A stretch of 64,000 nt of DNA from IMGVR_UViG_3300012931_000759:248001-312000; one strand, 5' to 3'; shown: positions 9,962-38,298, numbered from the stretch's first letter. Numbers and translations are program-made. Notes: a model not told the origin generated them from the sequence alone.

Positions 9962-12028
9962 ATGGCGGCACCAGTCATACCGATTCTTTTTCCATTGCCT
10001 ACCGACGGTGGGAGGGACAAGACATATCCGGAACTCGTGCGCTCGATGTCGTGTACCTGCCCGGCCGGAGCGATCATCAAGCCGAGCATCGCGCCGATCC
10101 CCGGGTTCAACCTTGGCGACATCATTGCCGACCAGTCCAAGCTGCTGGCCGCCTTGGCGGCGGGCTACAGCATGCTTACGGTGGTAATGAAGCTGGTCTC
10201 CTGTATCATCGACGTGCTCTGCGCCCTGATAAATCCCTTTTCGACCATCGCAGCTGTCGTGCGCCTGTTCGGCTCCTGCCTGCCGGACTTCATCCTGCTT
10301 CTCCCACAGCTGGCGATCCCGGCCATCATCCTCTGTATGATCAAGATCATCCTGGCCATCATTACCTACATCGTCACCGTGATTATACCCTTGATCCAGG
10401 ACATCATCGCCAACGTCCAGGACCTCATCGATGCCATCTCCACGGGGAACCAGCACGCCATCCAGGCGGTGGCCTTCAAGATCGTGTCCATCCTAAAGGA
10501 GCTGTACAACGTCGTGGGCATCCTGGCTGCGCTCGACGCCGTCCTGGCCATGGTGAAGGCTCTCCTCAGTCTAGGCATCGGCATCCCGTGCGGAGGAGGC
10601 GGGGGATCCTGTAGCGGATGCGGGGAGGCCCAGTGCCCCTCCGTGTTCGACAACTTCACCCTTTCCGGCGCAGACGGCATGTTGACGGCCACGGTGGTCT
10701 ACAGCGGCAGCCTGCTGAGCTACTTCCTGACCTTCACGTCGGCCGCGCACAACGAAGATTTCCTGGCCCTGCGGCCCTTCTTTCCGACCGGCGTCGACTA
10801 CAGCACGATAACCGACAGCACGAAGGTGCCCTATCTGCTGAATTGTAATGGATATTACACAGTTACCTCCGTGGACGAGGATGGGGCCCTGTCGCTTTTC
10901 CCGCTGCCGCAGCAGCAGCACAATGACGGATACCTGTCGAGTGTGTACTGCTCCAGTGCCATTTCAACCCCGGTTGACCCCACCGGCCGGTACGCCAGGT
11001 TCGGCACACGGGCGGCCAAGCCGCAGTTCTCCTCTGGCGACGTTGGCGTGTATCTGGAGCTTCTGGATTCCGACAGTACGGGAGCCGCGAAGAACAACGG
11101 CACATTCAGGATCTCCTCGGTTTACGACGGCTACAATGTCGTGCTCGATCACCTCAGCGCAAGCGCGTGGGATGCGCAGGCCTTGTACAACCCGTCGTTC
11201 GGCTCGGGCTGGAAAGTCGTGTGGCGCAAGGTCTACGTGCCGTCCACGGTTGGCCCGAGGCCCTACACGCTGGTTATTAACCACGAGGAGCTGATACGGC
11301 GCAATGTCATAAGTGTGGGCTGCCATCCGGACGTTCGAACAGCCGTGAAGGGGGCGAAGAATCGCAGCCCGTACCTGGATGTGCCCATTCCGCCGCTGCC
11401 CGACATCGAAGGGCTGGCGGCTGCGGCCACCGCGTGCCTCACCGCGATAGCGCCGATCGACGTCGACTCCCAGTATGTCATCGACAACTATGGTAGCATC
11501 GCGCAGGCGGCGGTTACCGCAGGCGACTGCCTCAACAGCGCGCTTGGCACCCTCGCGTCTAGCATGGTTTCGTACGCTTCGGATATCTACCCAAGGGTAT
11601 TCAGTCTTGACAAGTCGCTCCTGTCAGCGGACCGCTCGATCCAGATCGCCGGGGGAGACATCGTCGTAAGCGTCATCCCTATTGACATCAACGGCAACCG
11701 GCTCGCCGACGACCTGCCTCCCGGAGTGGTGGAGGTAAAAGTCTTCACCACCTTTGGTACACTGTCGGTGGTAGAGGAGATCCTGGACGATTCAGGTGTG
11801 TCGACCGGTGAATTCAGGGCTACTCTGACCAGTCGGATCATCGGAACGGCCGAGGTCACAGCTACCGTGGCCGACCAGTATGTCAGCAATTTCGACACCA
11901 CATTGAATCCGCCGGACTATGTGCCGCGAACGCTCGAATTGTCGTTCGTCGACGCGCGCCCGGCCGACACCAAGCCGCAGGACACGATGGAACCCCTTGG
12001 AATCGCGGGCACGGGCGGGGTGAAGTAG
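9962..12028 (+). CDS. Virion protein with hydrophobic Cys-rich helical N-terminus and C-terminal Ig-like (invasin/Big_1-like) domain
   Basis: SD GGAG. About 150 aa of hydrophobic helices at the N-terminus. The C-terminus VSVIPIDINGN..GEFRATLTSRIIGTAEVTATV resembles a bacterial Ig-like domain. Contains 2 DGY. Confidence 0.5.
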   Translation: MAAPVIPILFPLPTDGGRDKTYPELVRSMSCTCPAGAIIKPSIAPIPGFNLGDIIADQSKLLAALAAGYSMLTVVMKLVSCIIDVLCALINPFSTIAAVVRLFGSCLPDFILLLPQLAIPAIILCMIKIILAIITYIVTVIIPLIQDIIANVQDLIDAISTGNQHAIQAVAFKIVSILKELYNVVGILAALDAVLAMVKALLSLGIGIPCGGGGGSCSGCGEAQCPSVFDNFTLSGADGMLTATVVYSGSLLSYFLTFTSAAHNEDFLALRPFFPTGVDYSTITDSTKVPYLLNCNGYYTVTSVDEDGALSLFPLPQQQHNDGYLSSVYCSSAISTPVDPTGRYARFGTRAAKPQFSSGDVGVYLELLDSDSTGAAKNNGTFRISSVYDGYNVVLDHLSASAWDAQALYNPSFGSGWKVVWRKVYVPSTVGPRPYTLVINHEELIRRNVISVGCHPDVRTAVKGAKNRSPYLDVPIPPLPDIEGLAAAATACLTAIAPIDVDSQYVIDNYGSIAQAAVTAGDCLNSALGTLASSMVSYASDIYPRVFSLDKSLLSADRSIQIAGGDIVVSVIPIDINGNRLADDLPPGVVEVKVFTTFGTLSVVEEILDDSGVSTGEFRATLTSRIIGTAEVTATVADQYVSNFDTTLNPPDYVPRTLELSFVDARPADTKPQDTMEPLGIAGTGGVK

Positions 12029-12029
12029 A

Positions 12030-13643: not shown

Positions 13644-13659
13644 GGAACGGGAGACTAGC

Positions 13660-14088: not shown

Positions 14089-14173
14089 ATGGAATTTTCC
14101 GTGTAAACATATACAGAGAAGGATATGGCGAAAAAGAAAGAGTATCTGCTCAAGTTTGACGGGGGTGTGATTA

Positions 14174-17100
14174 ATGGTCAGGTTTAAAAGCTTCAACGAG
14201 GTCGTGCTCTCCATGTTGGAGAGACTGCGACTCACACAGCCGCAATTGGACGACAAGCCGAACTCGGTGGCTAGGGACGTATTTGTCGACCCCCCGGCTT
14301 TCGAGATCGGCGAAGTTTACGAGGCCATGCGCGCCATTGCGCGCCTTCAGTCGCTAGCCAACCTGACCGGAAACGACCTGACCAATTTCGGTGCGAATTT
14401 TGGCGCTAGTCGTAAGACAGGCACAAAGGCAAGCGGGCAGGTCGTTTTCACGTTCCGTAAGATTGACACGAATCTGACCATACCGGTCGGCACCGTAGTG
14501 ACCACCCGCAATGGCTTGAGTTTCGTCACGATCTCCAGTACTACCGTGCGGGTATCCGACTCCAACGCACTCCGGGCAACCGCAACCAGGTTGCGTGATG
14601 AGCTGGACACAGCTGGGATCACCGACCAGTACGCCATCGAAACGAGTGTTCAGGCCCAGAGTATTGGCTCGTCCGGCAACATAGCCACCTACTCGATCGT
14701 TTCCCATTCTGCATCCGGCGTCAACAGCGTTACGAACGTTGTGTCATTTACAGGCGGAACGGACGTGGAGACAGACGCAGCCTTCCGGTCACGTATCCTG
14801 GCTACATTTGCCGGGGCCAACACCGGGACATCCCTTGGATACAGGAGTCTGATTCTGGCCTTGGCAGATGCCATCGACGCGCTGGTAGTCGAGCCGGGCG
14901 ATCCCCTCATGGTCAGGGACGGGACAACCACAACGACCGACAGCAGTGGAAACACCATCGTGGCGCAGCCAGGAACGGGCGGAAAAGTCGACATCTACGT
15001 ACTGGGGGAGAACCTCCAGGCCGCCACGGACAGCTTTATTTATAAGGACAAGAGCGGCAAAAACGATCCTACCAGCCCCAACAACGACCATGTGCTCGGG
15101 CAATCGTCACTAACTCCGAACACCGCCCTTTCTCTCAACAGCAGGCGGCTGGGCGTGCTCTCCGAGGGCGAGGCGATCCCAACGCAACCTATCTCCTCGA
15201 TTACATCGGTCATCGGCAGCTCCTCCGGGCCCAATTTTGTCGAGCAGTACACCGACAGCTCGGATCAACTTGTGGGGAACTATAAGCTTGTCGGCGACAC
15301 CGGCGTGGCCCAAGGAAGCCCGTTTGGCCTCGATAAAATAGTGTGGACCTCGGATCGCATTAACATGTTGGCTGAGAGTCGCACAAAAGGCGCTTTCAAC
15401 AGCGTCGATGGCCTAGCATACACTGATGTGCTCGGCATATCGGGGATTACGCAGGATGTACGTGTGACAAACGAGAACTCGTCCGTGTCGAGCGACCGCT
15501 TCTATGTCACGGTAAAACACAAGCCTGTCCGTACCGTGAGTCGTATTTTCAACCTCACCACAGGCGAGCGGTACACGATATCCGACCAGAACCCGGACGG
15601 GCAAAGCAGCGCACTGAATGAGACGGGACGCATCAAGATCTCGGGACGAACCCTGCCAACCGCAAGCGACACACTCCAGGTAGACTATACGTGGGTGATG
15701 TCTTTTGCGCCAACTGTCGAGTTCGACACGCTGGATCCTAAGGATCCGACCAACAACGCTCAGGACTCGATCGACTGGGGCTTCCCGAACTACATCAGGG
15801 ACGAGTTGTCGTCGGCCAATCTCGACGCTTACGGCAAGCTGACGGTTGCCACGGCCTACCCGGTTGGGCGCCTGCTTGCGGTGAGCACTTTCCATCAGGA
15901 GACCCTGACGGTCGGGGGTACCTCCTCCAGGAAAACGATCACGACAATCAACACGGTTCTGAACATACATAGTATCAAGGACACTTCGAAAAGCGGGGCA
16001 GAAGTGTACAATACCCTCACAGCCGATGGCACCTTCTCCAACAGACTGATTGCGCTGCCAAGCGACTCGCTGGCTGCCCTCGGAGATCAAGTTGTTGTCG
16101 TGTATAGCACCACGGATCTGATGGACTCGTACCAGTCGGCTTCGGCCGTCGGAAAAACCATCACACTGTTCCCGTCCACATTGGTTGCCTCCGGCACCGC
16201 CGTCATGGTAGACTATGCGACCAGCCTGCTGAACATCCTACCACAGACGAACTTCACCTCGTTGCCAGTGGCTGGGGACGGCTACAACTCCTTCACGGGC
16301 ATTGATGGATACCAGCCTATGCTCGACACCTTCGCGGGAAGCGTGGTTGTCGACAACAAGCGCAGGACCCCGACGCACCTGAAGGTGACGGCCGCCGCCA
16401 TACCGACGCAGGGTACGTTAGAGTTCATCGGCATCACTATGAACAAGATCACCGGGATCTTTACGACTACAGCTGCCTCCACCGGCAGCGCCAACATTGT
16501 CGACCTAGCTCCCCTGATCAGGACCGCCGAGGGTCTTGGGCGTACGGCAACGATCCCCTCGAACATCGCAGTAGCCAGGCTTCTTTCACTGGAGGCGGTC
16601 TCGCTGGATATTACAGGGAATGTCAAATCGGTGAATACCACGTACGATCTCACAAACTACGCGTTGAAGACATCGCGTTGGGACCTGGCATACGCTACCC
16701 AGAACACCTCGCTCGGCAACGCGTCAATCCAATTGGCAGCCGTTGCCGCGAACACCAGCAGCCCGATCACAACCGGCAAACACTTGCGCGCCACTTTCTA
16801 CTACGCGAAGGGCAACGACTCCGAACGAATGTTCTTCTCCAAGAATGGCTCACAGATCACGGACAAGGTTTTCGCAAAGGTGGCGTCCATCGGACGCGTG
16901 TCCGGTTTCACGAACTCCGCCGGAGCGGTCAGCGGGCGGTTTACCGTCGACACCGCGACACAGCCGGAGCAGAACGTCGCCTACGCGGTCGACTACAGCT
17001 ACACGGCCCCGAAGAACAACGAGCGCATCACGGTGAATTACGAATACAATAAGCTCATCGGGGATGCTACTTTTGCCGTCGAGGAAGGGAGGCCGATCAC

Positions 17101-17428
17101 GGCCGATGTCTTGGTAAAAGTAGCCGAGGAAGTCAAGATCGACGTAACCGCAGAAATCATCGTGCTCCCGTCGTACGCAACCTCGTCCGACACGGTCAAA
17201 CAGGACGTGGCCGACAATATCTCGTCCAGTCTAAACGCCACGGCATTGAATACGACGCTGGATGTGTCCGATATTGTAGCCAACGCGTACAACGTAGCTG
17301 GCCTGGACAAGATCACAATCACGCGGTTCAACCAACAGGGACAATCCGGTACCGTCACAACTGTGGTTGCCGGGAAGAACCAATACCTGGCCGCCGGTAC
17401 GGTGACCATAACAGTCAAGACGCGCTGA
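14174..17428 (+). CDS. Baseplate J-like (gp6) wedge protein with large insertions
   Basis: RKTGTKASGQVVF, AQSIGSSGNIA, FTGGTDVETDAAFRSRI, PGTGGKVDIYVLG are baseplate-J hallmarks; 1084 aa; contains 2 DGY. Confidence 0.9.
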   Translation: MVRFKSFNEVVLSMLERLRLTQPQLDDKPNSVARDVFVDPPAFEIGEVYEAMRAIARLQSLANLTGNDLTNFGANFGASRKTGTKASGQVVFTFRKIDTNLTIPVGTVVTTRNGLSFVTISSTTVRVSDSNALRATATRLRDELDTAGITDQYAIETSVQAQSIGSSGNIATYSIVSHSASGVNSVTNVVSFTGGTDVETDAAFRSRILATFAGANTGTSLGYRSLILALADAIDALVVEPGDPLMVRDGTTTTTDSSGNTIVAQPGTGGKVDIYVLGENLQAATDSFIYKDKSGKNDPTSPNNDHVLGQSSLTPNTALSLNSRRLGVLSEGEAIPTQPISSITSVIGSSSGPNFVEQYTDSSDQLVGNYKLVGDTGVAQGSPFGLDKIVWTSDRINMLAESRTKGAFNSVDGLAYTDVLGISGITQDVRVTNENSSVSSDRFYVTVKHKPVRTVSRIFNLTTGERYTISDQNPDGQSSALNETGRIKISGRTLPTASDTLQVDYTWVMSFAPTVEFDTLDPKDPTNNAQDSIDWGFPNYIRDELSSANLDAYGKLTVATAYPVGRLLAVSTFHQETLTVGGTSSRKTITTINTVLNIHSIKDTSKSGAEVYNTLTADGTFSNRLIALPSDSLAALGDQVVVVYSTTDLMDSYQSASAVGKTITLFPSTLVASGTAVMVDYATSLLNILPQTNFTSLPVAGDGYNSFTGIDGYQPMLDTFAGSVVVDNKRRTPTHLKVTAAAIPTQGTLEFIGITMNKITGIFTTTAASTGSANIVDLAPLIRTAEGLGRTATIPSNIAVARLLSLEAVSLDITGNVKSVNTTYDLTNYALKTSRWDLAYATQNTSLGNASIQLAAVAANTSSPITTGKHLRATFYYAKGNDSERMFFSKNGSQITDKVFAKVASIGRVSGFTNSAGAVSGRFTVDTATQPEQNVAYAVDYSYTAPKNNERITVNYEYNKLIGDATFAVEEGRPITADVLVKVAEEVKIDVTAEIIVLPSYATSSDTVKQDVADNISSSLNATALNTTLDVSDIVANAYNVAGLDKITITRFNQQGQSGTVTTVVAGKNQYLAAGTVTITVKTR

Positions 17429-17438
17429 GGACCATAAG

Positions 17439-20400
17439 ATGACAAACCTGCGAGCCAAACAGCTGATGGTGAGGAGCAGCACGACAATCGAGGTGACCTT
17501 CACGGCCAGCCTCGATCCTAACATCGCTCCGTCGAACATCACCATCGATGGGGTTGGTGGCACACCGTCCGATCTCGCGGTAAAGTCGGTCTCCGTGTCC
17601 GGAGCGAAGCTGACCGTTACGGTCAAGCCGATGATCTCCGGGGCTCTGTACGAGATGGTCCTGGCCTCGACGTCCACCCAGTTCTTTGTTGGCGCGCACG
17701 GGGAAAGGCTTGTCGAGGACGGCGCCACGAACCATCTGTTCTTCACAGGCATCGAGGAAGAGAGCGATGTCTTCCAGGCACTCAGGGATTCGCTGCCGCC
17801 CATCTACGATCCCAAGGGTGGCTCCCTGCTGCGCGACCTGATCATGCCGATCGCGCGGGAGATCGAGGCGGCACAGCACGCAGCGAACGAGATTGGAGCC
17901 GCCAACTACATCTCCGTAGAGGTGACGGACGAAGGGATCACAAGGGGTTCCGGGCCATACGACCGGTTCGCAAACGAAGGTGTCTTCAAAATCCTCAGGG
18001 TGGGCGCAACTGCTACCAGCGTCGGCACCAGCAAAACAATTACGTATACTTCGTTCCCGTCTGATCCTATTAGCCTCCAGCAAGATGTCGTGGCGGAAGA
18101 GACAGTATCGAACGCGTCCGGAAGTTTAAACAGTTTCGATGGTTTGTTGATCTCTCTGTCTAATGGACCTGTCATCAATGTGTCCTCTATCGTTCTGGTG
18201 CGAGGAACCTCACAGTATGTCTACGATATTACACTGTTCCGCTACGGCCTGGAGGAAAGTAAATACGACAGCGCGAATGCCTACTCAGCTTTCGACATAA
18301 AGAATAATCAGGTGCGCTTAAGCACTGCGGCTGTCGGCCCGAGTTTTCCTCTTCCCCAAGGAAACGATATCATCAAGATCGGGTACACATACAAGAGACT
18401 TGGCCGCATTCCGAGTGTGTCCTCTGTGTCTATCACGACAACCGTCAACGTGGTCAGGGAAAGTGTTCCTGCAGTTGCGACATCCTTTTTTCTTGGACAC
18501 GCTCCAATTGTGAACAGGACAGGGGATACTGTCACTACGGGCGGTATTCAATGGATCAACCCGGCCGCCAATTTCGATCCCACCCTGAAGCACCCGGCAT
18601 TCGTGACCGAAATACCTTTCAGCGAGTCCAGCCTACCCTCTAAGGCGGGAGAGTTTGCCGTCAACTACTCGACCGGGCAGGTGATTGTGTTTGGGGTGGA
18701 TGGTTCAGGAACCGACGGAACAACCGTTGTGCCGCCAGTCGCGACCTACTGGTTCAAGCGAACTTTCCAAGACGGCCTGGATTATAACCTCTTTAGCGAC
18801 CTGTGGGAAATAGCGGCTGTGCCAGGACGCGACCTGGAAGGATCCCCGGCTACAATTTCCTTCACCTATGAAGAAACCTTTGCCGAGGGTACCGATTTCC
18901 TGTTCGCCTCGCATGTCGAGCAGATCGACGAGCGCGTCAATAACAGGCTGATCGGGGATTTTGGGCTGACAACTGAGTACGGTCCTGTGAACGAGGTGTT
19001 CCGTATTTTCAACGAGACGACCGGCGAGTTGTATCGCGTGTCCCGAATCTCCGGAAACCAAGTGTTTTTCCAGGCTACAACTCCCCCGAGACTGGTCCAG
19101 ATGGCGCGGGAGGCGGCATCATTCAACGAGCATATCCAGGCGCAGATCGTGGTTTCCGAGGAAGTGGCGATTCCCTCGAAGTCCTTCGTGGCCTTTAGGG
19201 TCGAATTACAGGATGCGAACATCGCCACAGCGACTGCCGATTATATAGGTGCCAGCTTTAACTCTTCGCTGCTGTTTTCCGACACCTCCACATTCGCGCG
19301 GGAAATGTACTTCGACCCAGAGGACACCGAGGGCAACAACCTCCAACGCCTACAACAGGTCGGGGACTACATGGTTAACTACGCCAACGGGGTCGCGCAT
19401 GTAGCAGTACTTTCCGGCAGCAGCACCGACATCGGCGACGCCTCGTACCGTTTCGGCGAGATCCTGACGGCGAACAAGCACATCACCGAAGTGTCGAACC
19501 TGTACCGCAGCGCGAGCGCCAAAGCGGAGAACGTCAAAATCTTCACAATCGGTGCCATCGTGGACGAGACGGTCGAGATCGTGGACCTGGAGCAGGTCGG
19601 CGAATCCTCCGTGGACGGCAACGCCATCCAGGTCTCCAGCGGAACTGTCGAGGTTTCGCAGGACGCCATGAGGGTGCGGCACATTTTCCAGGTGACCGAC
19701 CTGCGAACCGCCTCCGCGCCCGTGGACTTCGTGGCGGGGGCCGTGATCTCCTCGTCGCAACCCACTACGATCACGCTCGACCCAGACGGCGTGCCGGTGA
19801 CCGACTCCGGAGCAAACGGCGTCGGCCTCGAAGTCCAGACGGACGGTTTCAGGAAATACATAGAAGTCTCAAGACTTTCCAACATTGTGTCCGGTCCAAC
19901 GCAGCTTGCGACGCTGGTCGATAAGGTGGCCGACCCGGATTTCTTGGCCAGGGAATACTGGGTCATCGACATGGCGACCGGCCAGAACTACTTCGCGTTG
20001 GGGAACGACAGCTACATCGATGCCTCGGCCAACAGGATCTACCTGCCGAGCAACGTGCCTGACAGCGCCATCGGCACCTTGGTCGAGGCGCAGTACAGAG
20101 CGGCACTTCTGGACGGGGCTGCGGTCTTGGTCGACTATACCCCCGGCGACATCTTCATAGACTACACATATGTGGCCGACGAGATCCTGGTTAGCTACGA
20201 GTATGGCGACAACGTGCTGGATTGGAGCGTGTCCGATAACCTGTCGGCTGGACAGACGTACTATGTCAGCTACCGCTACGGCGCGCTGCGTGACGCGTTG
20301 CGTGACAATTTTGGCGTGCTCACTGGAATAGAAGAGCTGGCCACGGCCCCGCTTAGCCTAGAGCGCGAGTTGTACCGCGCTGGTCTTGCTGGGTCGCTCC

Positions 20401-23400
20401 AGTCCTTTTTGAAGGGGCCTACGATCCCCGCCATCCAAGCGTTGGTGAAAGCATTCACGGCCATCAACCCAACTATTGAGGAGTCCGTGTTTTTCGAATG
20501 GCTTGTCGGCCGCGACTACCTCAACCTACTGCCCATGACTCTCACTACGGCGCCGGACTCCTCCGAGGATGCGATGTTTGCCCCTGGCAAGTTCGGGTAT
20601 GGACTGTTACTCGACAGCGCGGGCCAGACGGCCAAGTTACCAGCCACCTCCAACATGCGTTTCGCCGACGGTACGTGGGAATGCCAGCTGACGCCCCTTT
20701 GGATGGGGGTTGACAATGACGCCGCGCTTACTTTGGATCTTCTGTTCGACGGCTATAGGATGCCGTCCAAGGTGTTCATTGGCGCGGGCGGATACAGCCC
20801 GGACGCCATCCCGTTCACCATCGACCGCTCGGACAGCAGGGTGCTGGGTCGGCCGCTAGCGCTACACAGCGAGAACGGATATTTTATCTGGTACGACAGC
20901 ACGGCTAAGAAATGGCGGCTGCGGACTAGGGGGCCGATCGACGAGCAACGGCTTTTTGAGGGTCAAATCACGTCCTCGGGTCAGTTTGGAGAGGTAACGG
21001 TAGCTTCCTCGGCGGACGGATACCTACCAGCCGACGGCTACGGTCTGGACGAGACCAACGACTATGTGAGATCCACCGACGACCTGCTGGAATTCTCGTT
21101 CTCGGTGGACGGGTACGATCTACTGAACCTCCCCCTGGACGCCTATGGCGACGGCTATTACGCGGCTTTTGACGGTGTGGATTTCCAATCGGACAATGTG
21201 CGCTACCTGTTCGACACCGGCGTCGAGTCGGCCAGGAACAGGATGTCGCTCTACAAGGATGGCCGTGGTTTTCTCAGATACCGTGTCTACGACTCGAATG
21301 GCCGCATGAAGATGCTTAGCGCGAACATCCGCGACTGGGAAGCCGGAGCAACACATCCTGTGGCGGTCGCCTGGAAACTCGGTACCGTGGAGCAGCGGGA
21401 CGAGATGCACCTGTTCGTGGATGGCCGCGAGGTGCCGAACACCTACAGATTCACCGGATACTTGCCGGTTCCCGCGACAGGCGGCGTGAAGTACATGGAC
21501 TCGGTTGGCGAGACTCTTGTATCCGGCGTCCCGGTCCCCACCGTGGGCGGCAGCGACATGATCACGGTTATCGGCTCGGATACCGTTTACTCCGCCAGCG
21601 CGACCTTCGGATCGGACGGAGTCGGGATCGGGGATCCCTTCGTTATCCTGGACTCCACGACGGATGGCGCCAACACCCGAATGTCCCCCTACGTTTTCGT
21701 CGCGGAGATTGTCGACGAAAACAGGCTGCGTCTGGAGATAGGTCCGGCCGGATCTGGTATCCCGTACCTCATGATATCCAGCTTGACCGGTGTCAGGTAT
21801 TCCATCAACCGGTTAACGCTCGCCACGGTGGCCGATCCCCTCATAGAGAAAGTCCGCGTCTATACAGTTTCACCAACCGGCGAGGCGATGGAACTCAGAT
21901 CCCCGAACGCGCTCAATCCCGACTACTCGTTCGATCGCGACGGATACCAGGACTATATCCTGCTTGACAATGGCCTTCCCATCGGTTGGGATATCGTGCT
22001 GTACTCCTACGGATTAACCCAGCAGAGAAGCAGGCAGTTCGCATATGTGTGGCCGTACAGGAGGACAAACCTCCTCAAGACTATCATGCCGCAGCCGACG
22101 GCCGTGTCTAAGATTAGGATTACGAACATCATCAGCAGGCGTGCAAACATCGAGGCGGGGGCCTTCGCGCTCGTGGCCACCATCGTCGGCGGCCACCCGG
22201 TCCAGATGCTTGCCTCCAACCTGCCGTTCTGCCAGCCCAGCGAGTCCATACACGGGCGTCGATTGGCTGCCACGATCATGGGCGACAACTTCGACTTCGG
22301 TGGCTTCAACCAGGTGACCATCACCGGCGACACTTTCGATGGGTACGGGGGCGAGACCCTCGCTTTTACGAATGTCGGCACGCTCGAGACAACCAGGTAT
22401 TTCCTATCAATCACGAGCGTCTCGGCCGCCTTTACACCGCTCGACCTGTCCAGGTCGGCTGGGACGATAGAGATCCGCGAGGCCCTGCCGCTCACGCAGC
22501 AAGAGAACGGCGGTGACTACGCCCAGGTGCGGCTGTCGACCCTGGATCAGTACGGTTTGGACGGCACCCTGTCGGTGGGCGCAAACACCTTCAGTGACGG
22601 ATATGCCAGATTCGGGGTCGAGGATATCAACCGGTTGATCTACATCGAGGGCGCTCCTCCGTCGTGGCCTTCGCACGTGTTCACGATCACCGACGTACAA
22701 CTCGACCCGTCCGGAACAGTCAAGGACTCCGACACGGTGGTCGTATCTGGGCAGATGCCACCGGTCGGCACATATACAGGTCTGCGCTGGTCGGAACGGA
22801 ATCTGTCCTTCGCCGACTCCGGATTCGCCAACGGCCTGATCACGCTGGAGATCGTCGGCAGCGGAGGCTTACCTTTCCTGCTGAGTAACTGCTGGTACCT
22901 GGTGGATTTCCCGAGCTATGCAATCATTCCGCTGGAAACTGTTCCGGAGACATTGTATGTGGGCTCCGACATGTTTGGGGCAAACCAGGCAGGAGCTGTT
23001 ATCGACGAAATGCACAGTCTGGCCGAAATGCTGACCGACACCGGTGCCGGTGAGGTGTTGCCAAGCTCCGGTAGGAGTGTCACCTCCGAGGCGGAAAGTG
23101 TGCGCGAACTGACGCCGATCACACAGTCGTTGGCATTGTTCCACTTCAACGGATGCCTGAAAAACCGGGCGAGCTTCTACTCCAGCTTCTCGCGTTCGTT
23201 CTTCCAGAGTTCCAACAGTGTCAACAGCCTGTTCGGGCAGTCGGGTGTCTTCAATGGCCAAGGCGCGCTCTCGATGGACAATGCCGGAATATTCTTCAAT
23301 AATGCCGGAACCATAGAGTTCTGGGTGAGCCCGATACTCGACACGTACAACGACCCGACCCGCAGGTACTATATCGACTTGAGCGCAGAGCAAACAGTAG

Positions 23401-24347
23401 TCGGAGACCCCATCTCGGCCCTCGTGGTTAGGATGCCGGTCAGGGCGCGATCGGTCGTTTCGGTAACGCTGCCGGATAGCGACACGAACTTCTTCACAGG
23501 AGGTTCACTGGGCGCGGATGGTGTGACTGTCAGGCTAGGGCAGAGGATTCCGGTACAGAGCCAGCCCACGGTCACATATATCCCGATCACCAGCCAAGGG
23601 GATCGCTTCAGCGTCTTTAAGGATGACAACGGGATGCTGGTCCTGTCCGTTACGGCCTCCGGAGTCGACTACCAGATCTCTGCGCCTGTCTACTGGAAAA
23701 AGAACACCTGGCATCGCGTGTGGATCGGATGGAGCCTGAACAACCCAGACAACCAGGACCGCCTGGTGCTTATGGTGGATGGGGCCGAGCGTGGCGTCAT
23801 CAGGTACGGAACCGGCCTCAGATACGGCCTAGCCGGACGGTACGGTATGCCGACCGTCTGGGGACAAGCTCGCGCGGGAACGATTGCCTCGAGGAACATC
23901 CTGGCGGACATCAACATGACGGACTTCTTCAGCACCGTACAGATCGGTAACGACTTCTCCGGCCAGTCGCCCGCCATGGCTAGGATGGACAACCTGCGGT
24001 TCTCTAGCCAGATGAGGTCGATCCTCTACCTAGGCGGACGCGGGCCCGGCCAACTGATAGGGAACGACCTCCTGTACACAAGCAACGTGAACACGGCCCA
24101 GCCCGTGATCGAGGACGCATTGACTACGTTGCTTCTGGATTTCGACACGGATAGCAGCCTGGTCGAGTACCTTATTGCGGTACACGACAGCGCTGCAGGC
24201 ATTTTCGATTTCTTCGTTACCGTCATCGACTCATTCAAACTGATCCCGAACCAGGACGTCAGGGACCTGATTAAGAAGCTGATCAACAGGTTGAAGCCGG
24301 CGCACACCAGAGCGTTTGTGGACTTCGGGGACACGGAAGATTGTTAA
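17439..24347 (+). CDS. Giant baseplate wedge protein (gp7/P2 gpI-like) with N-terminal Ig-like and two LamG-like domains
   Basis: 2302 aa. C-terminal LINRLKPAHT motif of wedge proteins; LKGPTIPAIQALV wedge core; LamG-like strands GTIEFWVSP, WHRVWIGW, LMVDG, MDNLRFS. Contains 8 DGY. Confidence 0.75.
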   Translation: MTNLRAKQLMVRSSTTIEVTFTASLDPNIAPSNITIDGVGGTPSDLAVKSVSVSGAKLTVTVKPMISGALYEMVLASTSTQFFVGAHGERLVEDGATNHLFFTGIEEESDVFQALRDSLPPIYDPKGGSLLRDLIMPIAREIEAAQHAANEIGAANYISVEVTDEGITRGSGPYDRFANEGVFKILRVGATATSVGTSKTITYTSFPSDPISLQQDVVAEETVSNASGSLNSFDGLLISLSNGPVINVSSIVLVRGTSQYVYDITLFRYGLEESKYDSANAYSAFDIKNNQVRLSTAAVGPSFPLPQGNDIIKIGYTYKRLGRIPSVSSVSITTTVNVVRESVPAVATSFFLGHAPIVNRTGDTVTTGGIQWINPAANFDPTLKHPAFVTEIPFSESSLPSKAGEFAVNYSTGQVIVFGVDGSGTDGTTVVPPVATYWFKRTFQDGLDYNLFSDLWEIAAVPGRDLEGSPATISFTYEETFAEGTDFLFASHVEQIDERVNNRLIGDFGLTTEYGPVNEVFRIFNETTGELYRVSRISGNQVFFQATTPPRLVQMAREAASFNEHIQAQIVVSEEVAIPSKSFVAFRVELQDANIATATADYIGASFNSSLLFSDTSTFAREMYFDPEDTEGNNLQRLQQVGDYMVNYANGVAHVAVLSGSSTDIGDASYRFGEILTANKHITEVSNLYRSASAKAENVKIFTIGAIVDETVEIVDLEQVGESSVDGNAIQVSSGTVEVSQDAMRVRHIFQVTDLRTASAPVDFVAGAVISSSQPTTITLDPDGVPVTDSGANGVGLEVQTDGFRKYIEVSRLSNIVSGPTQLATLVDKVADPDFLAREYWVIDMATGQNYFALGNDSYIDASANRIYLPSNVPDSAIGTLVEAQYRAALLDGAAVLVDYTPGDIFIDYTYVADEILVSYEYGDNVLDWSVSDNLSAGQTYYVSYRYGALRDALRDNFGVLTGIEELATAPLSLERELYRAGLAGSLQSFLKGPTIPAIQALVKAFTAINPTIEESVFFEWLVGRDYLNLLPMTLTTAPDSSEDAMFAPGKFGYGLLLDSAGQTAKLPATSNMRFADGTWECQLTPLWMGVDNDAALTLDLLFDGYRMPSKVFIGAGGYSPDAIPFTIDRSDSRVLGRPLALHSENGYFIWYDSTAKKWRLRTRGPIDEQRLFEGQITSSGQFGEVTVASSADGYLPADGYGLDETNDYVRSTDDLLEFSFSVDGYDLLNLPLDAYGDGYYAAFDGVDFQSDNVRYLFDTGVESARNRMSLYKDGRGFLRYRVYDSNGRMKMLSANIRDWEAGATHPVAVAWKLGTVEQRDEMHLFVDGREVPNTYRFTGYLPVPATGGVKYMDSVGETLVSGVPVPTVGGSDMITVIGSDTVYSASATFGSDGVGIGDPFVILDSTTDGANTRMSPYVFVAEIVDENRLRLEIGPAGSGIPYLMISSLTGVRYSINRLTLATVADPLIEKVRVYTVSPTGEAMELRSPNALNPDYSFDRDGYQDYILLDNGLPIGWDIVLYSYGLTQQRSRQFAYVWPYRRTNLLKTIMPQPTAVSKIRITNIISRRANIEAGAFALVATIVGGHPVQMLASNLPFCQPSESIHGRRLAATIMGDNFDFGGFNQVTITGDTFDGYGGETLAFTNVGTLETTRYFLSITSVSAAFTPLDLSRSAGTIEIREALPLTQQENGGDYAQVRLSTLDQYGLDGTLSVGANTFSDGYARFGVEDINRLIYIEGAPPSWPSHVFTITDVQLDPSGTVKDSDTVVVSGQMPPVGTYTGLRWSERNLSFADSGFANGLITLEIVGSGGLPFLLSNCWYLVDFPSYAIIPLETVPETLYVGSDMFGANQAGAVIDEMHSLAEMLTDTGAGEVLPSSGRSVTSEAESVRELTPITQSLALFHFNGCLKNRASFYSSFSRSFFQSSNSVNSLFGQSGVFNGQGALSMDNAGIFFNNAGTIEFWVSPILDTYNDPTRRYYIDLSAEQTVVGDPISALVVRMPVRARSVVSVTLPDSDTNFFTGGSLGADGVTVRLGQRIPVQSQPTVTYIPITSQGDRFSVFKDDNGMLVLSVTASGVDYQISAPVYWKKNTWHRVWIGWSLNNPDNQDRLVLMVDGAERGVIRYGTGLRYGLAGRYGMPTVWGQARAGTIASRNILADINMTDFFSTVQIGNDFSGQSPAMARMDNLRFSSQMRSILYLGGRGPGQLIGNDLLYTSNVNTAQPVIEDALTTLLLDFDTDSSLVEYLIAVHDSAAGIFDFFVTVIDSFKLIPNQDVRDLIKKLINRLKPAHTRAFVDFGDTEDC

Positions 24348-24673
24348 TGGAACTTATAGAACTATTGGCGTGTATGTTTTACATGGGCTCGAAACCAATG
24401 ATGTGGCGATACGCTCTCCAGAGAAACAGACACGACTGTCATACACACGAAATATCCCGATGTCTCGCCACTTTAAAAGTGTTTTGTGGGCAACGGCACA
24501 ATTGGTCGACAATGTAGTTTTTCTGTACCAATTGTTTTACGAACCGAGAAGTTGAGTGTTTTTAAAGATCTGAATCATCTTTTTTGATATTTTTTTCGCA
24601 ACCTGTGCGACGCAGAAACCCAAATGGCAAAGATGTTTCTAAAATCTATTTGCCTAGGGGCTTCCTTGACTAA
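24347..24673 (+). pseudogene. Decayed CxxC zinc-repeat (endonuclease-associated) gene
   Basis: ATG overlaps the upstream stop (TAATG). The single frame reads ..ACMFYMGSKPMMWR..FCGQR..*FFCTNCFTNREVECF*..PVRRRNPNGKDVSKIY..*, resembling the repeats of 2177-2914 and 62145-62726. In-frame stops at 24515, 24563 and 24671; AT-rich. Confidence 0.5.
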
Positions 24674-24745
24674 GATGTTAAAATCCATCGGACTGCCTCC
24701 TTTGAAGTGTCTGGCTTACCGGTGGAAAATCGATGGAGGGCTGTC

Positions 24746-27574
24746 ATGAGTACAACACGTCTGCCTGTGGATTTAAAAAGGGTGGCATATTACGACGGGC
24801 AGCAGCTCACGCGCGATGACCTGCGCGACGAGCAGAACCGGCACGTCGGCATCGACGCGGCCACGGTCGCTAACTTCCTCGGAAGCGGGGTAGTGAGCGA
24901 CTCGGCAATTCCGCAGGTCCTTCTGGACACGGCGGAACTGAATCCCCAGCAGCAGGCGTTGCTCGACGCTTACTCGTTCGATGGGCAGAATGTCTACATC
25001 GGAACCGGACTGAAGCAGGTGTCGGATCCCGTGAATGGCGTGCTGCTAGCAGTCACGCTAACTGGCGTGGATCTCGTCGGCTCGATGGCGACCAAGGTAG
25101 CCATTATTGGCGAAACTTTCGGCGGGGGCCTTGTACACGACGAGCTTGTGTTCGAGGAGAATGGCACACAAGTTACGCGGGGGCGGTACAAAGAGGTGTT
25201 TGGCATCCTCCTCAATGACTTCGCAGGCAATCTATTCGGAAGTCTCTCCCCGGCAACCATCTATGTCGGCGGATATCAACTCGTGGGACGCTGTGTCGTC
25301 AGAGAGGCGGAGGCCTTGGAGGTCTCCATGGACACCCTGATAGCTTCGCAAACGGCTCAACCCAACCAGTTCTTCGGGAATTTCAAGCTCGGCAGCCCGT
25401 CATACACGCTGACTTCGTTATTCCAGGAGATCATTGGACCCTCGCATTCGCCCTCCGACCTTGGCATTAGTATTGCCTCGGTCGCCCAGCGGCAGATCGA
25501 CCCGGACGACGTGACAACCAGGATAGGGCAGAAGTTCCTGGCCACAGGGACGAACATCCAAAAGATCTCGATACTCGCGTCAGTGCTAAGGGACGAAAGC
25601 ACCCTGCCGGGAAACGAATACAATTGGTCGGGCCAGATCGTACTCAATCTCCTGGCGCTCCAGACGACAGTCGATTGTCCGGTGAAGCCGGTGCCCGATA
25701 ACCTCGAGGATTTCGATCCGGATCCCACAGTGGTAGCCCAGCTGTCGCTGGATGCGACGGATCTCGTGCGGCAAGGTGTCGTGCTGGATGGTTACGCTAG
25801 AAAAATCGATTTCGTGCTGACAGAGACCTCGATCGCCGATCCGCTGATTTCCCCCATTGAGCAGGGGCGTCACTATGTGTTCACCATCGGGCGCGCAGGC
25901 AATGCCAACGTCGGCACCCTGCTGTTCGAGGAAGCGGTCCACTCCACCCTGAATGGCTACATGGTAATCTACGACGGTACCCAATGGGTCAACATCTATG
26001 AGAGCGACATGTGGTTCGAGGTCTACGGCGATTATGTGAAGATCGCCGACGGCATCGCCTATCAGGAGGGCGTCGGTGTGGAGATCCCACGCTTGGCAGA
26101 GGATGCCAGCGGCGTCGAGTCCCCGAACTACGTGGGCCTGGTTCCATTCGCAACCACTGCCAAGGACGCCAAGAACTTCGTCCTCATGGAGGTGGAGACA
26201 ACCTACAGCGACACGCAGCAGGATCCACGAACGGGCAATCCGGTGTCCTCCAGGCTAGCGCCCTCCGCAGCCGTATCCATGGTTAAAGAGACGGATTTCC
26301 AGACGCAGCTTGCGGCGGACTTGGTGCCGCTCGCGCTGGCGCGTGCCACGGACGAGAACCCGAGGGGAAATCCCGTGTCCATATTGGGCACAACTACATT
26401 GGCTGGTGCTGTGTATGGCAACCACATACATGTTATCGCGCCGAACGCCGATCTGCTGTCGAACAACATCGTTGGCTCCATGTTGCTGCCGGACTCTGCC
26501 GAGAACAAGGAGTACCGCATTGTCTCTGTGTTGCTTAGCATGGACGCCTACGGCGATGTGGACGGTGACGGCGAGATCACATTCGCCGACCTTGCCATCG
26601 TGAACACTTGGCTACCCGACGGCTACGACCTCTCGGACCCCGTAGACCAGCAAAAGCTGATCGACGGCAAAGTCCCCCTGGACCGCGTCCTGCGGGCCGA
26701 CGTAAACGGGGACGGGAAAGTGGATATCACTGACGCGACGCTCATCCAGGCCTTCCTGGACAAGAGCATTTCGACGTTCCCGGCCGGTTCCTCTTTCCAG
26801 CGTATACTTATCAGGGTGGAGAACAAGTTGAATCCGCTGGCGGCCCAGGCCGACATGGCGGCGGACAACCCAGATTTCACCACTGTTCCGTTCGTCTCGA
26901 TTCCGTGGACGGTTGGCTACTTTAGGACATGGCTGCCTGACCGGATTGACCTGTGTGACATGCGTCGGTTGGTGCCGACCACGTTCACCGCTTTGCCAGA
27001 TGGCGATACCTGCTACGGTGGCCGGAACGACTTCTTTATTCCCGGTAACCAGCTATTGGACGGCTATGTTATGGACAAGTTCGGCGACCCGCATCGGCTC
27101 GACTTCGAGGTTGCCCATCTGTCCCTGAGGATCCCTGTGACCGACACGCTGGGTAACCCTACAATCCTCGACGGCTATGTGGGATTCCTACTATTCGACT
27201 CCTTCGTGGCCGAATCCTCGCTCGGCAAAACTTCGGCAGGTTTCCAGGCCATGAAGTACAGTGACCGGAGTTTCGTCCAGATCGGCGATTTCGGGGCCGG
27301 GCGTGTGCGCATCACAGCCTCACTACAGTCGCTAGCGAACGCCTGGCCGTCCCCGTTTGGTGGGAATGTGGACGACCTGGTCGGAATGTACTACGACCCA
27401 ACCACTTCGCTCCTGGTGCTACAAACCAGGAACCTGCTGAACGACGGCTATGGCAACCTACTGCCGTCCCAATGTATGCGGATCCTGGTAACTGTCTACC
27501 TGAAGAAGGCAGGATTCGCGAATACGACGCAAGATGTGACGGATGGCCAGATGCGCACCCTGTTGGGTATTTGA
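24746..27574 (+). CDS. Tail fibre / baseplate-attached protein with a dockerin-like domain
   Basis: Start moved to ATG 24746 (SD GGAGG). N-terminal RVAYYDGQQLTRDDLRDEQ is typical of baseplate-attached fibre proteins of contractile systems. Paired GDVDGDGEITFADL / ADVNGDGKVDITDA repeats. Contains 5 DGY. Confidence 0.7.
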   Translation: MSTTRLPVDLKRVAYYDGQQLTRDDLRDEQNRHVGIDAATVANFLGSGVVSDSAIPQVLLDTAELNPQQQALLDAYSFDGQNVYIGTGLKQVSDPVNGVLLAVTLTGVDLVGSMATKVAIIGETFGGGLVHDELVFEENGTQVTRGRYKEVFGILLNDFAGNLFGSLSPATIYVGGYQLVGRCVVREAEALEVSMDTLIASQTAQPNQFFGNFKLGSPSYTLTSLFQEIIGPSHSPSDLGISIASVAQRQIDPDDVTTRIGQKFLATGTNIQKISILASVLRDESTLPGNEYNWSGQIVLNLLALQTTVDCPVKPVPDNLEDFDPDPTVVAQLSLDATDLVRQGVVLDGYARKIDFVLTETSIADPLISPIEQGRHYVFTIGRAGNANVGTLLFEEAVHSTLNGYMVIYDGTQWVNIYESDMWFEVYGDYVKIADGIAYQEGVGVEIPRLAEDASGVESPNYVGLVPFATTAKDAKNFVLMEVETTYSDTQQDPRTGNPVSSRLAPSAAVSMVKETDFQTQLAADLVPLALARATDENPRGNPVSILGTTTLAGAVYGNHIHVIAPNADLLSNNIVGSMLLPDSAENKEYRIVSVLLSMDAYGDVDGDGEITFADLAIVNTWLPDGYDLSDPVDQQKLIDGKVPLDRVLRADVNGDGKVDITDATLIQAFLDKSISTFPAGSSFQRILIRVENKLNPLAAQADMAADNPDFTTVPFVSIPWTVGYFRTWLPDRIDLCDMRRLVPTTFTALPDGDTCYGGRNDFFIPGNQLLDGYVMDKFGDPHRLDFEVAHLSLRIPVTDTLGNPTILDGYVGFLLFDSFVAESSLGKTSAGFQAMKYSDRSFVQIGDFGAGRVRITASLQSLANAWPSPFGGNVDDLVGMYYDPTTSLLVLQTRNLLNDGYGNLLPSQCMRILVTVYLKKAGFANTTQDVTDGQMRTLLGI

Positions 27575-28388: not shown

Positions 28389-28404
28389 CGGGCGCAGAAT
28401 CTTC

Positions 28405-35938: not shown

Positions 35939-35940
35939 AT

Positions 35941-36780: not shown

Positions 36781-36782
36781 AC

Positions 36783-38293: not shown

Positions 38294-38298
38294 CCATC

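Follow-up and report, generated by a model that had tools for sequence, protein, structure and literature searches.

An Asp-Gly-Tyr motif enriched on the tail proteins of a clade of jumbo phages

The outer tail proteins of an uncultured 340-kb phage and of at least 75 relatives carry the tripeptide Asp-Gly-Tyr (DGY) 10-24 times more often than expected by chance, and glycosyltransferase (GT) genes follow the fibre gene in 56 of 57 testable loci. This looks like an attachment or recognition tag and possibly a new tyrosine glycosylation site, although any modification is at present inferred from sequence alone. Our starting point was a window of 64,000 nucleotides (IMGVR_UViG_3300012931_000759:248001-312000), for which an original prediction had listed 17 DGY tripeptides in four virion proteins and interpreted them as a short linear motif for a phage-encoded modification, most plausibly Tyr O-glycosylation by the adjacent GT cluster. 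The observation proved correct at every coordinate, and the effect is larger than had been estimated. The four carrier proteins and their sites, together with the conservation of each site and, where a model was inspected, its predicted structural context, are as follows:

9962..12028 (+), 688-aa tail/baseplate protein with no family match, 2 DGY; orthologues in five relatives carry 2-5 DGY
10925..10933 (+), DGY site at aa 322; DGY in 6 of 7 orthologues
11126..11134 (+), DGY site at aa 389; DGY in 3 of 7 orthologues and DAY in 3 of 7
14174..17428 (+), baseplate J-like protein of 1084 aa (PF04865 at aa 66-289, E 3.6e-28), 2 DGY in the C-terminal extension
16277..16285 (+), DGY site at J aa 702; DGY in 2 of 8 orthologues, the others having DGF, NGF, NGY, NGA, NNL or NQF
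16304..16312 (+), DGY site at J aa 711; DGY in 7 of 8 orthologues
17439..24347 (+), 2302-aa wedge/peripheral baseplate protein (LamG-like modules), 8 DGY; the 22 homologues carry 3-15 DGY each against about 0.6 expected
20748..20756 (+), DGY site at wedge aa 1104; DGY in 13 of 22 homologues, the others including DGV, DGL, DGM and EGV; follows a strand end in the model (D and G in a turn, Y a bridge), pLDDT about 94
21015..21023 (+), DGY site at wedge aa 1193; DGY in 14 of 22 homologues; low-confidence loop
21033..21041 (+), DGY site at wedge aa 1199; DGY in 12 of 22 homologues; same low-confidence loop, forming a DGYxxxDGY pair with aa 1193
21108..21116 (+), DGY site at wedge aa 1224; DGY in 11 of 22 homologues, also DGW 3, DAY 3 and DGF 1; directly after a strand, at the start of a low-confidence loop
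21150..21158 (+), DGY site at wedge aa 1238; DGY in 8 of 22 homologues; loop with pLDDT about 51
21939..21947 (+), DGY site at wedge aa 1501; DGY in 19 of 22 homologues; four-residue hairpin loop
22338..22346 (+), DGY site at wedge aa 1634; DGY in 10 of 22 homologues; five-residue hairpin loop, pLDDT about 88
22596..22604 (+), DGY site at wedge aa 1720; DGY in 12 of 22 homologues and DAY in 3; loop after a strand
24746..27574 (+), 942-aa tail fibre with a dockerin type I module (PF00404, E 2e-8), 5 DGY; the 37 homologues carry 207 DGY against 10.2 expected
25787..25795 (+), DGY site at fibre aa 348 (942-aa numbering); DGY in 24 of 37 homologues, also DGT 3 and NGT 2; loop with pLDDT about 93
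26618..26626 (+), DGY site at fibre aa 625, inside the dockerin module; DGY in 13 of 37 homologues; loop between a helix and a short bridge
27059..27067 (+), DGY site at fibre aa 772; DGY in 14 of 37 homologues; within a loop with pLDDT below 50 (residues 762-785)
27170..27178 (+), DGY site at fibre aa 809; DGY in 33 of 37 homologues; D and G in a loop, Y the first residue of a strand
27443..27451 (+), DGY site at fibre aa 900; DGY in 24 of 37 homologues; within a loop with pLDDT below 50 (residues 899-905)

Two minor points of annotation required correction: the fibre starts at ATG 24746 and not at GTG 24707, and the LamG assignment of the wedge rests on weak precomputed Pfam hits in homologues, as our own Pfam scan found nothing at E<=0.01. 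Elsewhere in the window a single DGY is found, in the helicase (54361), which corresponds to 1 in the non-structural genes against about 1.9 expected, whereas there are none in the tape measure, the tube initiator, the ORFs 7672-9951 and 12030-13643, or gp25.

To assess the significance of the enrichment, we compared the observed counts with several expectations. From the composition of the four proteins 1.12 DGY are expected, which corresponds to a Poisson p of 6.7e-15 and to 5e-11 after Bonferroni correction for 8000 tripeptides; no other tripeptide is significant, the next being NRL with p 5e-5. Of 53 DG dipeptides 17 are followed by Y, and of 28 xGY 17 have D. A first-order Markov model raises the expectation to 3.6 (p 2e-7), and in 2000 residue shuffles the mean was 1.13 and the maximum 7. 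The original prediction had further claimed that selection acts on the protein and that the motif is not a DNA repeat, and this holds: the codons vary (GAC 14/GAT 3; GGC 9/GGA 5/GGG 2/GGT 1; TAC 11/TAT 6), 18 of 23 plus-strand matches to GAYGGNTAY are in the coding frame, and only 2 matches are found on the minus strand. Moreover, the flanks of 25 aa on either side of the sites are no more alike than random segments, with pair scores of mean 19.8 and maximum 31 against a mean of 19.1 and a 99th percentile of 31 at random sites, which excludes an internal repeat domain and does not support an explanation by a known repeat fold.

We next asked whether the signal persists in relatives and found it in every relative examined. 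Across 76 related IMG/VR loci with GC contents from 28 to 57%, the J plus wedge region has 530 DGY against 53 expected and the fibre 421 against 17; pooled, this gives 951 against 70.5 (13.5x), while the next tripeptide is at 3.5x. The order of the residues matters, since DYG is at 0.35x and GDY, GYD, YDG and YGD are at 1.4-2.3x; this also led us to reject the idea of paratope-like loops that are merely rich in D, G and Y. The tyrosine hydroxyl is required as well, in that DGF is at or below expectation and occurs once in fibres against 10.8 expected while DGY occurs 207 times, although Tyr is replaced by F, W, V, L or M at some sites (wedge aa 1104 and 1224; J aa 702), which suggests partial burial at these positions. 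NGY and EGY are near expectation, DGW is not enriched, and DAY is the only other enriched variant. In 849 unique contexts Pro never follows the motif, and K/R are depleted on both flanks. The sites turn over between relatives: DGY occupies 44 alignment columns in 22 wedges and 26 in 37 fibres, and homologues at about 30% identity keep the number of motifs but not their positions. Tandem arrays occur in loops or linkers; one upstream protein has five DGY within 22 residues, and two of the related loci, L008 and L018, carry similar arrays. A reading of the five-DGY array as an N-terminal tag was rejected because this ORF runs off the 5' end of the locus. Likewise, the even spacing of neighbouring DGY (4, 6, 8) was rejected as evidence for beta periodicity, as the spacing-6 count (74) is close to the number of loci and may largely reflect one conserved pair shared by descent.

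The restriction to outer virion proteins, likewise part of the original prediction, also holds. Besides the four carriers, the motif is present in the non-core part of the sheath, in two beta-helix spike-like proteins and in small proteins upstream of the window, but not in the tape measure, hub, spike, gp25, tube-like proteins, HNH endonuclease or glycosyltransferases. In 109,656 aa of co-located enzymes there are 5 DGY against 16.7 expected; this depletion ranks only 154th of 4866 tripeptides, and because homologous families over-disperse such counts it is no more than suggestive. As controls, the phage G tail module has 2 DGY against 1.98 expected, and T4 structural proteins have 4 against 1.06. 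In AlphaFold models of wedge and fibre, D and G lie in non-regular DSSP states at all 13 modelled sites, the loop geometries differ, and 6 of the 13 sites have pLDDT below 60. Burial of the motif is therefore not supported, as judged from secondary structure and pLDDT alone. A Foldseek search of the wedge model against the PDB returned only non-specific multidomain beta-sandwich matches with TM-scores at or below 0.12. The phage collection searched contains no close cultured relative, the best match being phage G baseplate J at 28% identity, and single-protein locus scans with PrkA, tubulin and the upstream spike returned no close clade relative, only the query itself and two PrkA loci at about 38% identity.

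Because the modification hypothesis invokes the neighbouring sugar genes, we turned to the region downstream of the fibre, which comprises the following features:

28366..29337 (+), GT-A (DxD) glycosyltransferase-like paralogue 1, assigned from alignment motifs; seen only in the near clade
30204..32474 (+), double GT4-type glycosyltransferase (Pfam), 0 DGY; its N-terminal half (aa 1-396, nt 30204-31391) is the clade-conserved fibre-adjacent GT and the candidate priming enzyme
32489..35938 (+), 1149-aa multidomain glycosyltransferase (GT2 plus a GT1-like part), 0 DGY
35821..37637 (+), GT-A (DxD) paralogues 2 and 3 (35821-36780 and 36783-37637)
37622..52343 (+), nucleotide-sugar and glycan cluster with methyltransferases, GT2s, a GT47-like protein, FdtA, a DegT aminotransferase, 4,6-dehydratases/epimerases, a nucleotidyltransferase and two GIY-YIG endonucleases; 0 DGY in all of these genes

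The link to this cluster is strengthened by synteny. GT homologues lie within 10 kb downstream of the fibre in 56 of 57 loci, a GT4-like family of about 370 aa starts directly after the fibre in 55 loci, and the window GT hits ORFs in 62 loci. The downstream sugar chemistry varies, with 3-amino-6-deoxyhexose and 6-deoxyhexose genes in the window and NeuB/CMP-synthetase/GT29-like genes in the related loci L007 and L018. However, no relative lacking GTs was found, so that co-occurrence does not discriminate between the readings; the distant outgroups phage G and T4 lack both features. A PDB sequence search with the large GT2 protein found nothing, that with the GT4 protein found only generic GT4 enzymes, and a promoter and terminator scan between the fibre and the GT genes gave nothing above chance. 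The three GT-A paralogues of the window have no Pfam hit; of their family members, 12 of 30 hit PF03407 and 5 of 30 hit GT8 (PF01501, best E 1.2e-4), and the best PDB profile hit, 6mw5, is weak (E 0.16).

Taken together, we regard DGY, more loosely D-[G>A]-Y, as an order-specific short linear motif that requires the tyrosine hydroxyl and is displayed on loops and linkers of outward-facing tail proteins in a large clade of uncultured jumbo myoviruses, namely the J C-terminal extension, the wedge, the fibres, the beta-helix spike-like proteins and the non-core part of the sheath. Its most likely function, held only tentatively, would be that of the recognition and acceptor site of a phage-encoded covalent modification made late in infection in the cytoplasm, with O-glycosylation of the Tyr as the leading candidate. 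In this model the GT4-like enzyme conserved directly downstream of the fibre genes would prime the Tyr, the lineage-variable glycosyltransferases and nucleotide-sugar pathways that follow it would extend the glycan, and the result would be a glycan coat on the distal tail whose sugar chemistry differs between relatives. Our analysis establishes the enrichment, its specificity and distribution among proteins, its persistence across the clade with turnover of sites, the loop location in models and the conserved gene order; that anything is attached to the Tyr, that the attachment is a sugar and which enzyme attaches it remain inferences. The interpretation of the original prediction is partly supported, but its inference of O-glycosylation at DGY has no direct support, and the evidence fits a non-covalent recognition motif almost as well. 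Moreover, the GT cluster could instead act on host envelope glycans or on DNA, no GT4-family enzyme is known to glycosylate protein Tyr, and no Tyr sequon is known in any system. Literature searches on a DGY motif, on phage tyrosine glycosylation and on jumbo-phage tail glycosylation found nothing relevant.

Among the alternatives, which we consider unlikely to varying degrees, the strongest is a non-covalent recognition motif, in which loops and arrays would act as multivalent stickers that dock accessory or decoration proteins or neighbouring tail subunits, or bind a glycan or a cation on the host surface, while the GT cluster would be functionally unrelated and act, for example, on the host envelope. 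Order and Tyr specificity, loop location, tandem arrays and turnover are what a short linear interaction motif would also show; one site lies in the dockerin Ca-loop region, the motifs of the beta-helix spike-like proteins lie N-terminal to the beta-helix in the part that usually attaches a spike to the particle, and a 118-aa protein with four DGY could be an adaptor. On the other hand, no candidate reader domain was identified, occurrence on many different proteins, including the sheath and the wedge itself, is odd for a docking code, three residues give little binding energy, the deeply conserved fibre-GT adjacency would be a coincidence, and sugar-binding sites usually favour Trp. A general calcium-binding loop of the EF-hand type, with acidic residues at loop positions 1, 3 and 5 before the Gly, does not account for the motif, as none of the 17 sites has D or N at both -2 and -4 from the Asp and only fibre aa 625 lies in the dockerin module.

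Less likely still is a lineage-specific structural micro-motif of beta-sandwich and Greek-key modules, in which an Asp-Gly turn is followed by a Tyr whose hydroxyl hydrogen-bonds to the backbone, like a tyrosine corner, without ligand or modification. Five of the eight wedge sites directly follow a strand end, the Tyr often starts the next strand or bridge, hydrophobic or aromatic replacements occur at some sites, the carriers are rich in beta structure, and a preference for Y over F is reportedly typical of tyrosine corners (Hemmingsen et al. 1994). However, the loops are heterogeneous (2-, 4- and 5-residue loops as well as long low-confidence ones), G is commonly replaced by A, which is unfavourable in a tight type I' turn, sites turn over rapidly, arrays such as five DGY within 22 residues, DGYDGY and DGYQDGYQDG cannot each be a domain-core turn, and the beta-rich tail proteins of T4 and phage G show no comparable enrichment. 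A different tyrosine modification, such as sulfation, phosphorylation, nucleotidylation or oxidative cross-linking by an enzyme encoded elsewhere in the genome or by the host, is also improbable on present evidence: the acidic residue close to the Tyr, the neighbouring Gly and the depletion of K/R resemble the loose context of tyrosine sulfation, and all motif-level evidence applies to any Tyr modification, but no sulfotransferase, Tyr kinase or similar enzyme was detected among the window's genes, with about 84 kb of the 340 kb examined, and the conserved neighbours are glycosyltransferases. Chance, compositional bias or a DNA-level repeat, for which nothing speaks beyond the modest D, G and Y content of these proteins, is refuted by the statistics, the mixed codons, the behaviour of the permutations and the persistence over the range of GC contents.

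In its boldest form, which we consider possible but less likely than not, DGY would be the first defined tyrosine O-glycosylation sequon in any system and would mark a phage-encoded cytoplasmic glycosylation system that coats the baseplate periphery, fibres, spike-like proteins and outer sheath of a widespread clade of jumbo phages, with the glycan diversified by lineage-variable glycosyltransferases in the way O-antigens diversify. If DGY is a modification site, it would provide a simple sequence rule for finding glycosylated or otherwise modified phage proteins in metagenomes as well as a candidate tyrosine-directed glycosyltransferase, useful for glycoengineering because Tyr-glycan bonds are chemically robust. 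It would also explain why large sugar-biosynthesis clusters sit inside the tail modules of many uncultured jumbo phages, where the glycans could shield the receptor-binding apparatus from host defences or proteases, or tune adsorption. If it is not, an order-specific tripeptide held at 10-24 times expectation from 28 to 57% GC is still an unusually clear case of selection on a short linear motif in virus structural proteins that needs an explanation.

Several known systems offer a comparison. One is the virion glycosylation of mycobacteriophages by phage-encoded glycosyltransferases (Freeman et al. 2023, as summarised in PMC12619734): there, too, GT genes are encoded next to structural genes, the sugar genes differ between relatives, and the modification proposed here would likewise take place in the cytoplasm on virion surface proteins. 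The mycobacteriophage glycans, however, are reported at the C-termini of capsid and tail-tube subunits, whereas the candidate sites described here are a defined Tyr-containing tripeptide scattered over loops of the baseplate, fibres, spike-like proteins and outer sheath, and are inferred from sequence without chemical evidence. The three-residue O-glycosylation motif of the Bacteroidetes B. fragilis and T. forsythia (PMC8698959) and the D/E-X-N-X-S/T sequon of Campylobacter PglB are similarly short, with an acidic residue close to the acceptor, at -2 from Asn in the PglB sequon as the Asp is at -2 from Tyr in DGY, and with Pro excluded next to the motif. Those systems act in the periplasm via lipid-linked glycans and oligosaccharyltransferases on Ser/Thr or Asn, while the acceptor here would be Tyr and the enzymes are soluble GT-A or GT-B types with no oligosaccharyltransferase detected. 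Tyrosine O-glycosylation of the S-layer proteins of Paenibacillus alvei (SpaA) and Thermoanaerobacter (PMC2943079) shares the would-be acceptor on a surface-array protein, and long glycans would be built by multidomain glycosyltransferases and methyltransferases from deoxy-sugar pathways like those in the window. The S-layer glycan, by contrast, is assembled on a lipid carrier and transferred outside the membrane to a few sites, no consensus motif is stated in that review, and the motif is not enriched in that system. Among cytoplasmic protein-directed GT-A enzymes of family GT8, glycogenin glucosylates Tyr and the Skp1 alpha-galactosyltransferase is the weak best PDB hit of the three GT-A paralogues, whose matches permit no inference of acceptor specificity and whose family is confined to the near clade, whereas DGY enrichment is clade-wide. 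Finally, the tyrosine corner of Greek-key beta proteins (LxPGxY, DxGxYxC) shares a Tyr near the start of a strand after a Gly-containing turn and the lack of interchangeability of Y with F. Its signature spacing has G at Y-2 and D, L or P at Y-4 or Y-5, whereas here D is at Y-2 and G at Y-1 in all sites, and DGY also occurs in loops that appear disordered and in tandem arrays, turns over quickly and is restricted to one phage clade.

We first translated all 45 plus-strand genes of the window and counted the tripeptide DGY. The 17 sites described in the original prediction were all found exactly where it had placed them: two in the protein encoded at 9962-12028, two in the baseplate J protein, eight in the 2302-aa wedge, and five in the fibre. 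The observation is thus confirmed, and the only other site in the window lies in the UvsW-like helicase (54361). From each protein's own composition, 1.12 sites are expected in the four proteins, which gives a Poisson p of 6.7e-15, or 5e-11 after correction for 8000 tripeptides, whereas the next tripeptide (NRL, 7 against 0.92) is not significant. Of 53 DG dipeptides 17 are followed by Y, and 17 of 28 xGY begin with D. A first-order Markov expectation is 3.6 (p 2e-7), and in 2000 residue shuffles the mean was 1.13 and the count never exceeded 7.

The original prediction had further claimed that selection acts on the protein and not on a DNA repeat. In line with this, 18 of 23 plus-strand matches to GAYGGNTAY are in the coding frame, the minus strand has only two matches, and the codons are mixed. 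Moreover, the ±25-residue flanks of the sites are no more similar to one another than random segments of the same proteins are (mean score 19.8 against 19.1; maximum 31 against a 99th percentile of 31). A repeated domain or repeat fold, which had been named beforehand as an explanation that would count against a modification motif, is therefore excluded.

To place the motif in its genomic context, we next examined the gene order of the window, which is part of the 340-kb IMG/VR contig 3300012931_000759. No cultured phage is close; the best match is the baseplate J protein of phage G at 28% identity. All genes are on one strand and run in this order: tube initiator, a 1585-aa ORF with no family match (tape measure by position and length), two unassigned tail proteins, an unassigned protein, the gp25-like sheath initiator, baseplate J, the wedge, and a fibre with a dockerin module. 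Next come a double GT4 protein and a 1149-aa multidomain GT, followed by a cluster of about 16 kb that holds GT2s, a GT47-like protein, methyltransferases, FdtA, a DegT aminotransferase, an RmlA-like nucleotidyltransferase, 4,6-dehydratases/epimerases and two GIY-YIG endonucleases. After the cluster lie a TubZ/PhuZ-like tubulin, a UvsW-like helicase, DnaB, PrkA and a DUF444 protein. The individual features are as follows.

Features of the window, all on the plus strand
11-1327: 3' part of a 742-aa ORF that begins upstream of the window (9089-11317 in L011, a locus of the same contig); Gly-rich, almost free of Tyr, and without a family match
9962-12028: protein with two DGY
14174-17428: baseplate J protein, two DGY
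17439-24347: 2302-aa wedge, eight DGY
24707-24746: start region of the fibre (five DGY), which most likely begins at ATG 24746, with GGAGGG upstream and giving the 942-aa product on record, rather than at GTG 24707
26550-26760: dockerin type I module (PF00404, E 2e-8) embedded in the fibre (aa 602-671 in 942-aa numbering), conserved in most of the 86 homologues; a conserved DAY precedes its first Ca loop
28366-29337, 35821-36780 and 36783-37637: three paralogous ORFs of 284-323 aa, probably GT-A glycosyltransferases
30204-31391: N-terminal half of the double GT4 protein
40758-42624: three long overlapping ORFs (40758-41486, 41333-42220, 42013-42624); the FdtA domain starts only at residue 78 of the last one, so start codons are probably miscalled or a frameshift is present
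43442-44422 and 45273-46481: two GIY-YIG (LEM-3-like) homing-endonuclease genes with HTH domains, flanking the 4,6-dehydratase gene inside the sugar cluster; GC drops to 0.49 at 44-48 kb
52300-53790: TubZ/PhuZ-like tubulin directly after the sugar cluster, followed by the UvsW-like helicase and DnaB
58908-62144 and 62723-63892: PrkA (AAA plus PrkA C-terminal domain) gene near a DUF444/VWA (YeaH-like) gene, separated only by a 193-aa ORF (62145-62726); a bacterial stress or sporulation-type gene pair carried by a phage

We then asked whether the enrichment is shared by relatives. Five related IMG/VR contigs show the same pattern in the same four orthologues and in extra fibre-like ORFs. The 22 wedge homologues (32-87% identity) carry 3-15 DGY each against about 0.6 expected, and the 37 fibre homologues carry 207 against 10.2. 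Some sites are well conserved, namely wedge aa 1501 in 19 of 22, fibre aa 809 in 33 of 37, and J aa 711 in 7 of 8. Even so, DGY occupies 44 different alignment columns in the wedge family and 26 in the fibre family, which is the second most of any tripeptide in the former and the most in the latter. Homologues at about 30% identity keep the number of motifs but not their positions: an example is the distant relative L008, with 15 in the wedge and 9 in the fibre, including several closely spaced arrays. A profile scan with the fibre alignment returned 76 loci from contigs of up to 473 kb, with GC from 28 to 57%. Pooled over these loci, the 10 kb upstream of the fibre (J plus wedge) holds 530 DGY against 53.3 expected, the fibre 421 against 17.2, and the 10 kb downstream 52 against 26.8. 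Over all structural ORFs DGY is at 13.5 times expectation, and the next tripeptide is at 3.5 times.

The signal is specific for the residues and their order. DGF, DGW, DGH and EGY are at or below about 1.6 times expectation, NGY is at 1.3-2.7 times, and in fibres DGF occurs once against 10.8 expected. The only clearly enriched variant is DAY, at 2.9 times in wedges and 9.6 times in fibres, which often substitutes at DGY columns. The five other permutations of D, G and Y are at 0.35-2.3 times expectation, so local D/G/Y richness does not explain the signal. In 849 unique 15-residue contexts Pro never follows the Tyr, and Lys and Arg are depleted on both sides. Additionally, in the structural ORFs of the 76 related loci Cys is strongly enriched at -2 (11.9x) and +3 (8.8x) around DGY, which suggests one conserved CxDGYxxC site in a subclade.

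Walking upstream on the same contig, we found that the four proteins of the original prediction are a subset of a larger set. The additional carriers lie 10-20 kb upstream of the window, at 152-1126, 1234-5142, 5146-5502 and 7136-11773 of locus L095 and at 4101-6698 of locus L011. They comprise the tail sheath, two large proteins with right-handed beta-helix domains, a 118-aa protein and a virion structural protein. The sheath (PHROG tail-sheath matches to aa 554-864) has three DGY at aa 91, 169 and 451, all outside the conserved core, and a relative's sheath also has three. The two beta-helix proteins, which look like tailspikes, carry 3 and 6 DGY, all N-terminal to the beta-helix. The 118-aa protein carries four, and the virion structural protein carries five within 22 residues; its ORF runs off the locus, so the array is internal to the protein. 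An HNH endonuclease in the same stretch has none. Within the window the tape measure, the 7672-9951 and 12030-13643 proteins, gp25 and all 30-odd enzymes together have one site. As controls, the tail module of phage G has 2 against 1.98 expected, and T4 structural proteins have 4 against 1.06.

For a structural view, a piece of the wedge (aa 1040-1790) was modelled with AlphaFold2 at a mean pLDDT of 75, and the whole fibre at a mean pLDDT of 82. In both models the D and G of all 13 sites fall in non-regular DSSP states. The predicted local geometry is not uniform, however: wedge aa 1104 follows a strand end with Y as a bridge, aa 1501 and 1634 sit in four- and five-residue hairpin loops, aa 1193, 1199 and 1238 as well as fibre aa 772 and 900 sit in long low-confidence loops, and fibre aa 625 is in the dockerin loop region. 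At a few sites the Tyr is replaced by hydrophobic residues in relatives, so not every site need be fully exposed.

Because the original prediction had linked the motif to the adjacent glycosyltransferases, we analyzed the genes downstream of the fibre. Among loci with at least 4 kb downstream of the fibre, 56 of 57 have GT homologues within 10 kb, and the exception has additional fibre-like ORFs filling that space. Clustering of downstream ORFs shows one GT family of about 370 aa in 55 of the 76 related loci, with a median start about 700 nt after the fibre. The N-terminal half (aa 1-396) of the window's 756-aa GT4 protein is its orthologue, and the window protein matches ORFs in 62 loci, 55 of them of 330-420 aa, with E down to 1e-85. 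The remaining genes of the sugar cluster vary between relatives: the window has 3-amino-6-deoxyhexose and 6-deoxyhexose pathways with methyltransferases, whereas the distant relatives L007 (19700-24463) and L018 (14868-24551) have NeuB-like, CMP-sugar synthetase and GT29 (sialyltransferase-like) genes after the fibre, which points to a nonulosonic-acid glycan in place of the deoxyhexoses. The order baseplate, fibre, GT cluster, tubulin, helicase recurs in L008. DGY is scarce in the co-located enzymes (5 against 16.7 expected), but it ranks only 154th of 4866 tripeptides by depletion and homologous families inflate such deviations, so we treat this as suggestive only. The three paralogous ORFs have no Pfam hits themselves but share DxD (YTDADM), FNVG and CYHYH motifs; their family weakly matches PF03407 and GT8, its best PDB hit (E 0.16) is the Skp1 alpha-galactosyltransferase, and it is confined to the near clade. 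This is a lead, not evidence for Tyr specificity.

Taken together, the data describe a short linear motif under selection for presence and number on outward-facing tail proteins, as indicated by strict order, strict Tyr, a small middle residue, Pro exclusion, unrelated flanks, heterogeneous loop contexts, tandem arrays, rapid positional turnover with a maintained count, independence from GC content, and restriction to outer tail proteins. They do not describe a fold-determined turn. Something must read the motif, either an enzyme or a binding partner, and the only conserved, physically linked candidates are glycosyltransferases; the variable sugar chemistry downstream is what one expects of a surface-exposed glycan under diversifying selection. 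We therefore rank O-glycosylation of the Tyr, primed by the conserved GT4-like enzyme, first, albeit tentatively and with less than even confidence. A non-covalent docking or adhesion motif comes second, with lower confidence, a structural turn motif is less likely still, and another Tyr modification is the least likely of the four. While the enrichment, its specificity, its distribution and the conserved gene order are results of the analysis, any modification of the Tyr, its chemical nature, the responsible enzyme and, equally, any binding partner are inferred from sequence, models and synteny alone. The original prediction is supported in part: selection on the protein and restriction to outer virion proteins hold, and the link to the GT cluster is strengthened by synteny, whereas the inference of Tyr O-glycosylation at DGY is without direct support.

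With regard to known systems, literature searches found no report of a DGY motif or of a Tyr sequon, and since the attached glycan that defines such systems is only inferred here, we do not claim membership in any of them. Phage-encoded virion glycosylation is known in mycobacteriophages, but at the C-termini of capsid and tail-tube subunits (as summarised in PMC12619734). Three-residue O-glycosylation motifs exist in Bacteroidetes (PMC8698959), and Tyr-linked glycans exist on S-layers (PMC2943079); both are made outside the cytoplasm via lipid carriers.
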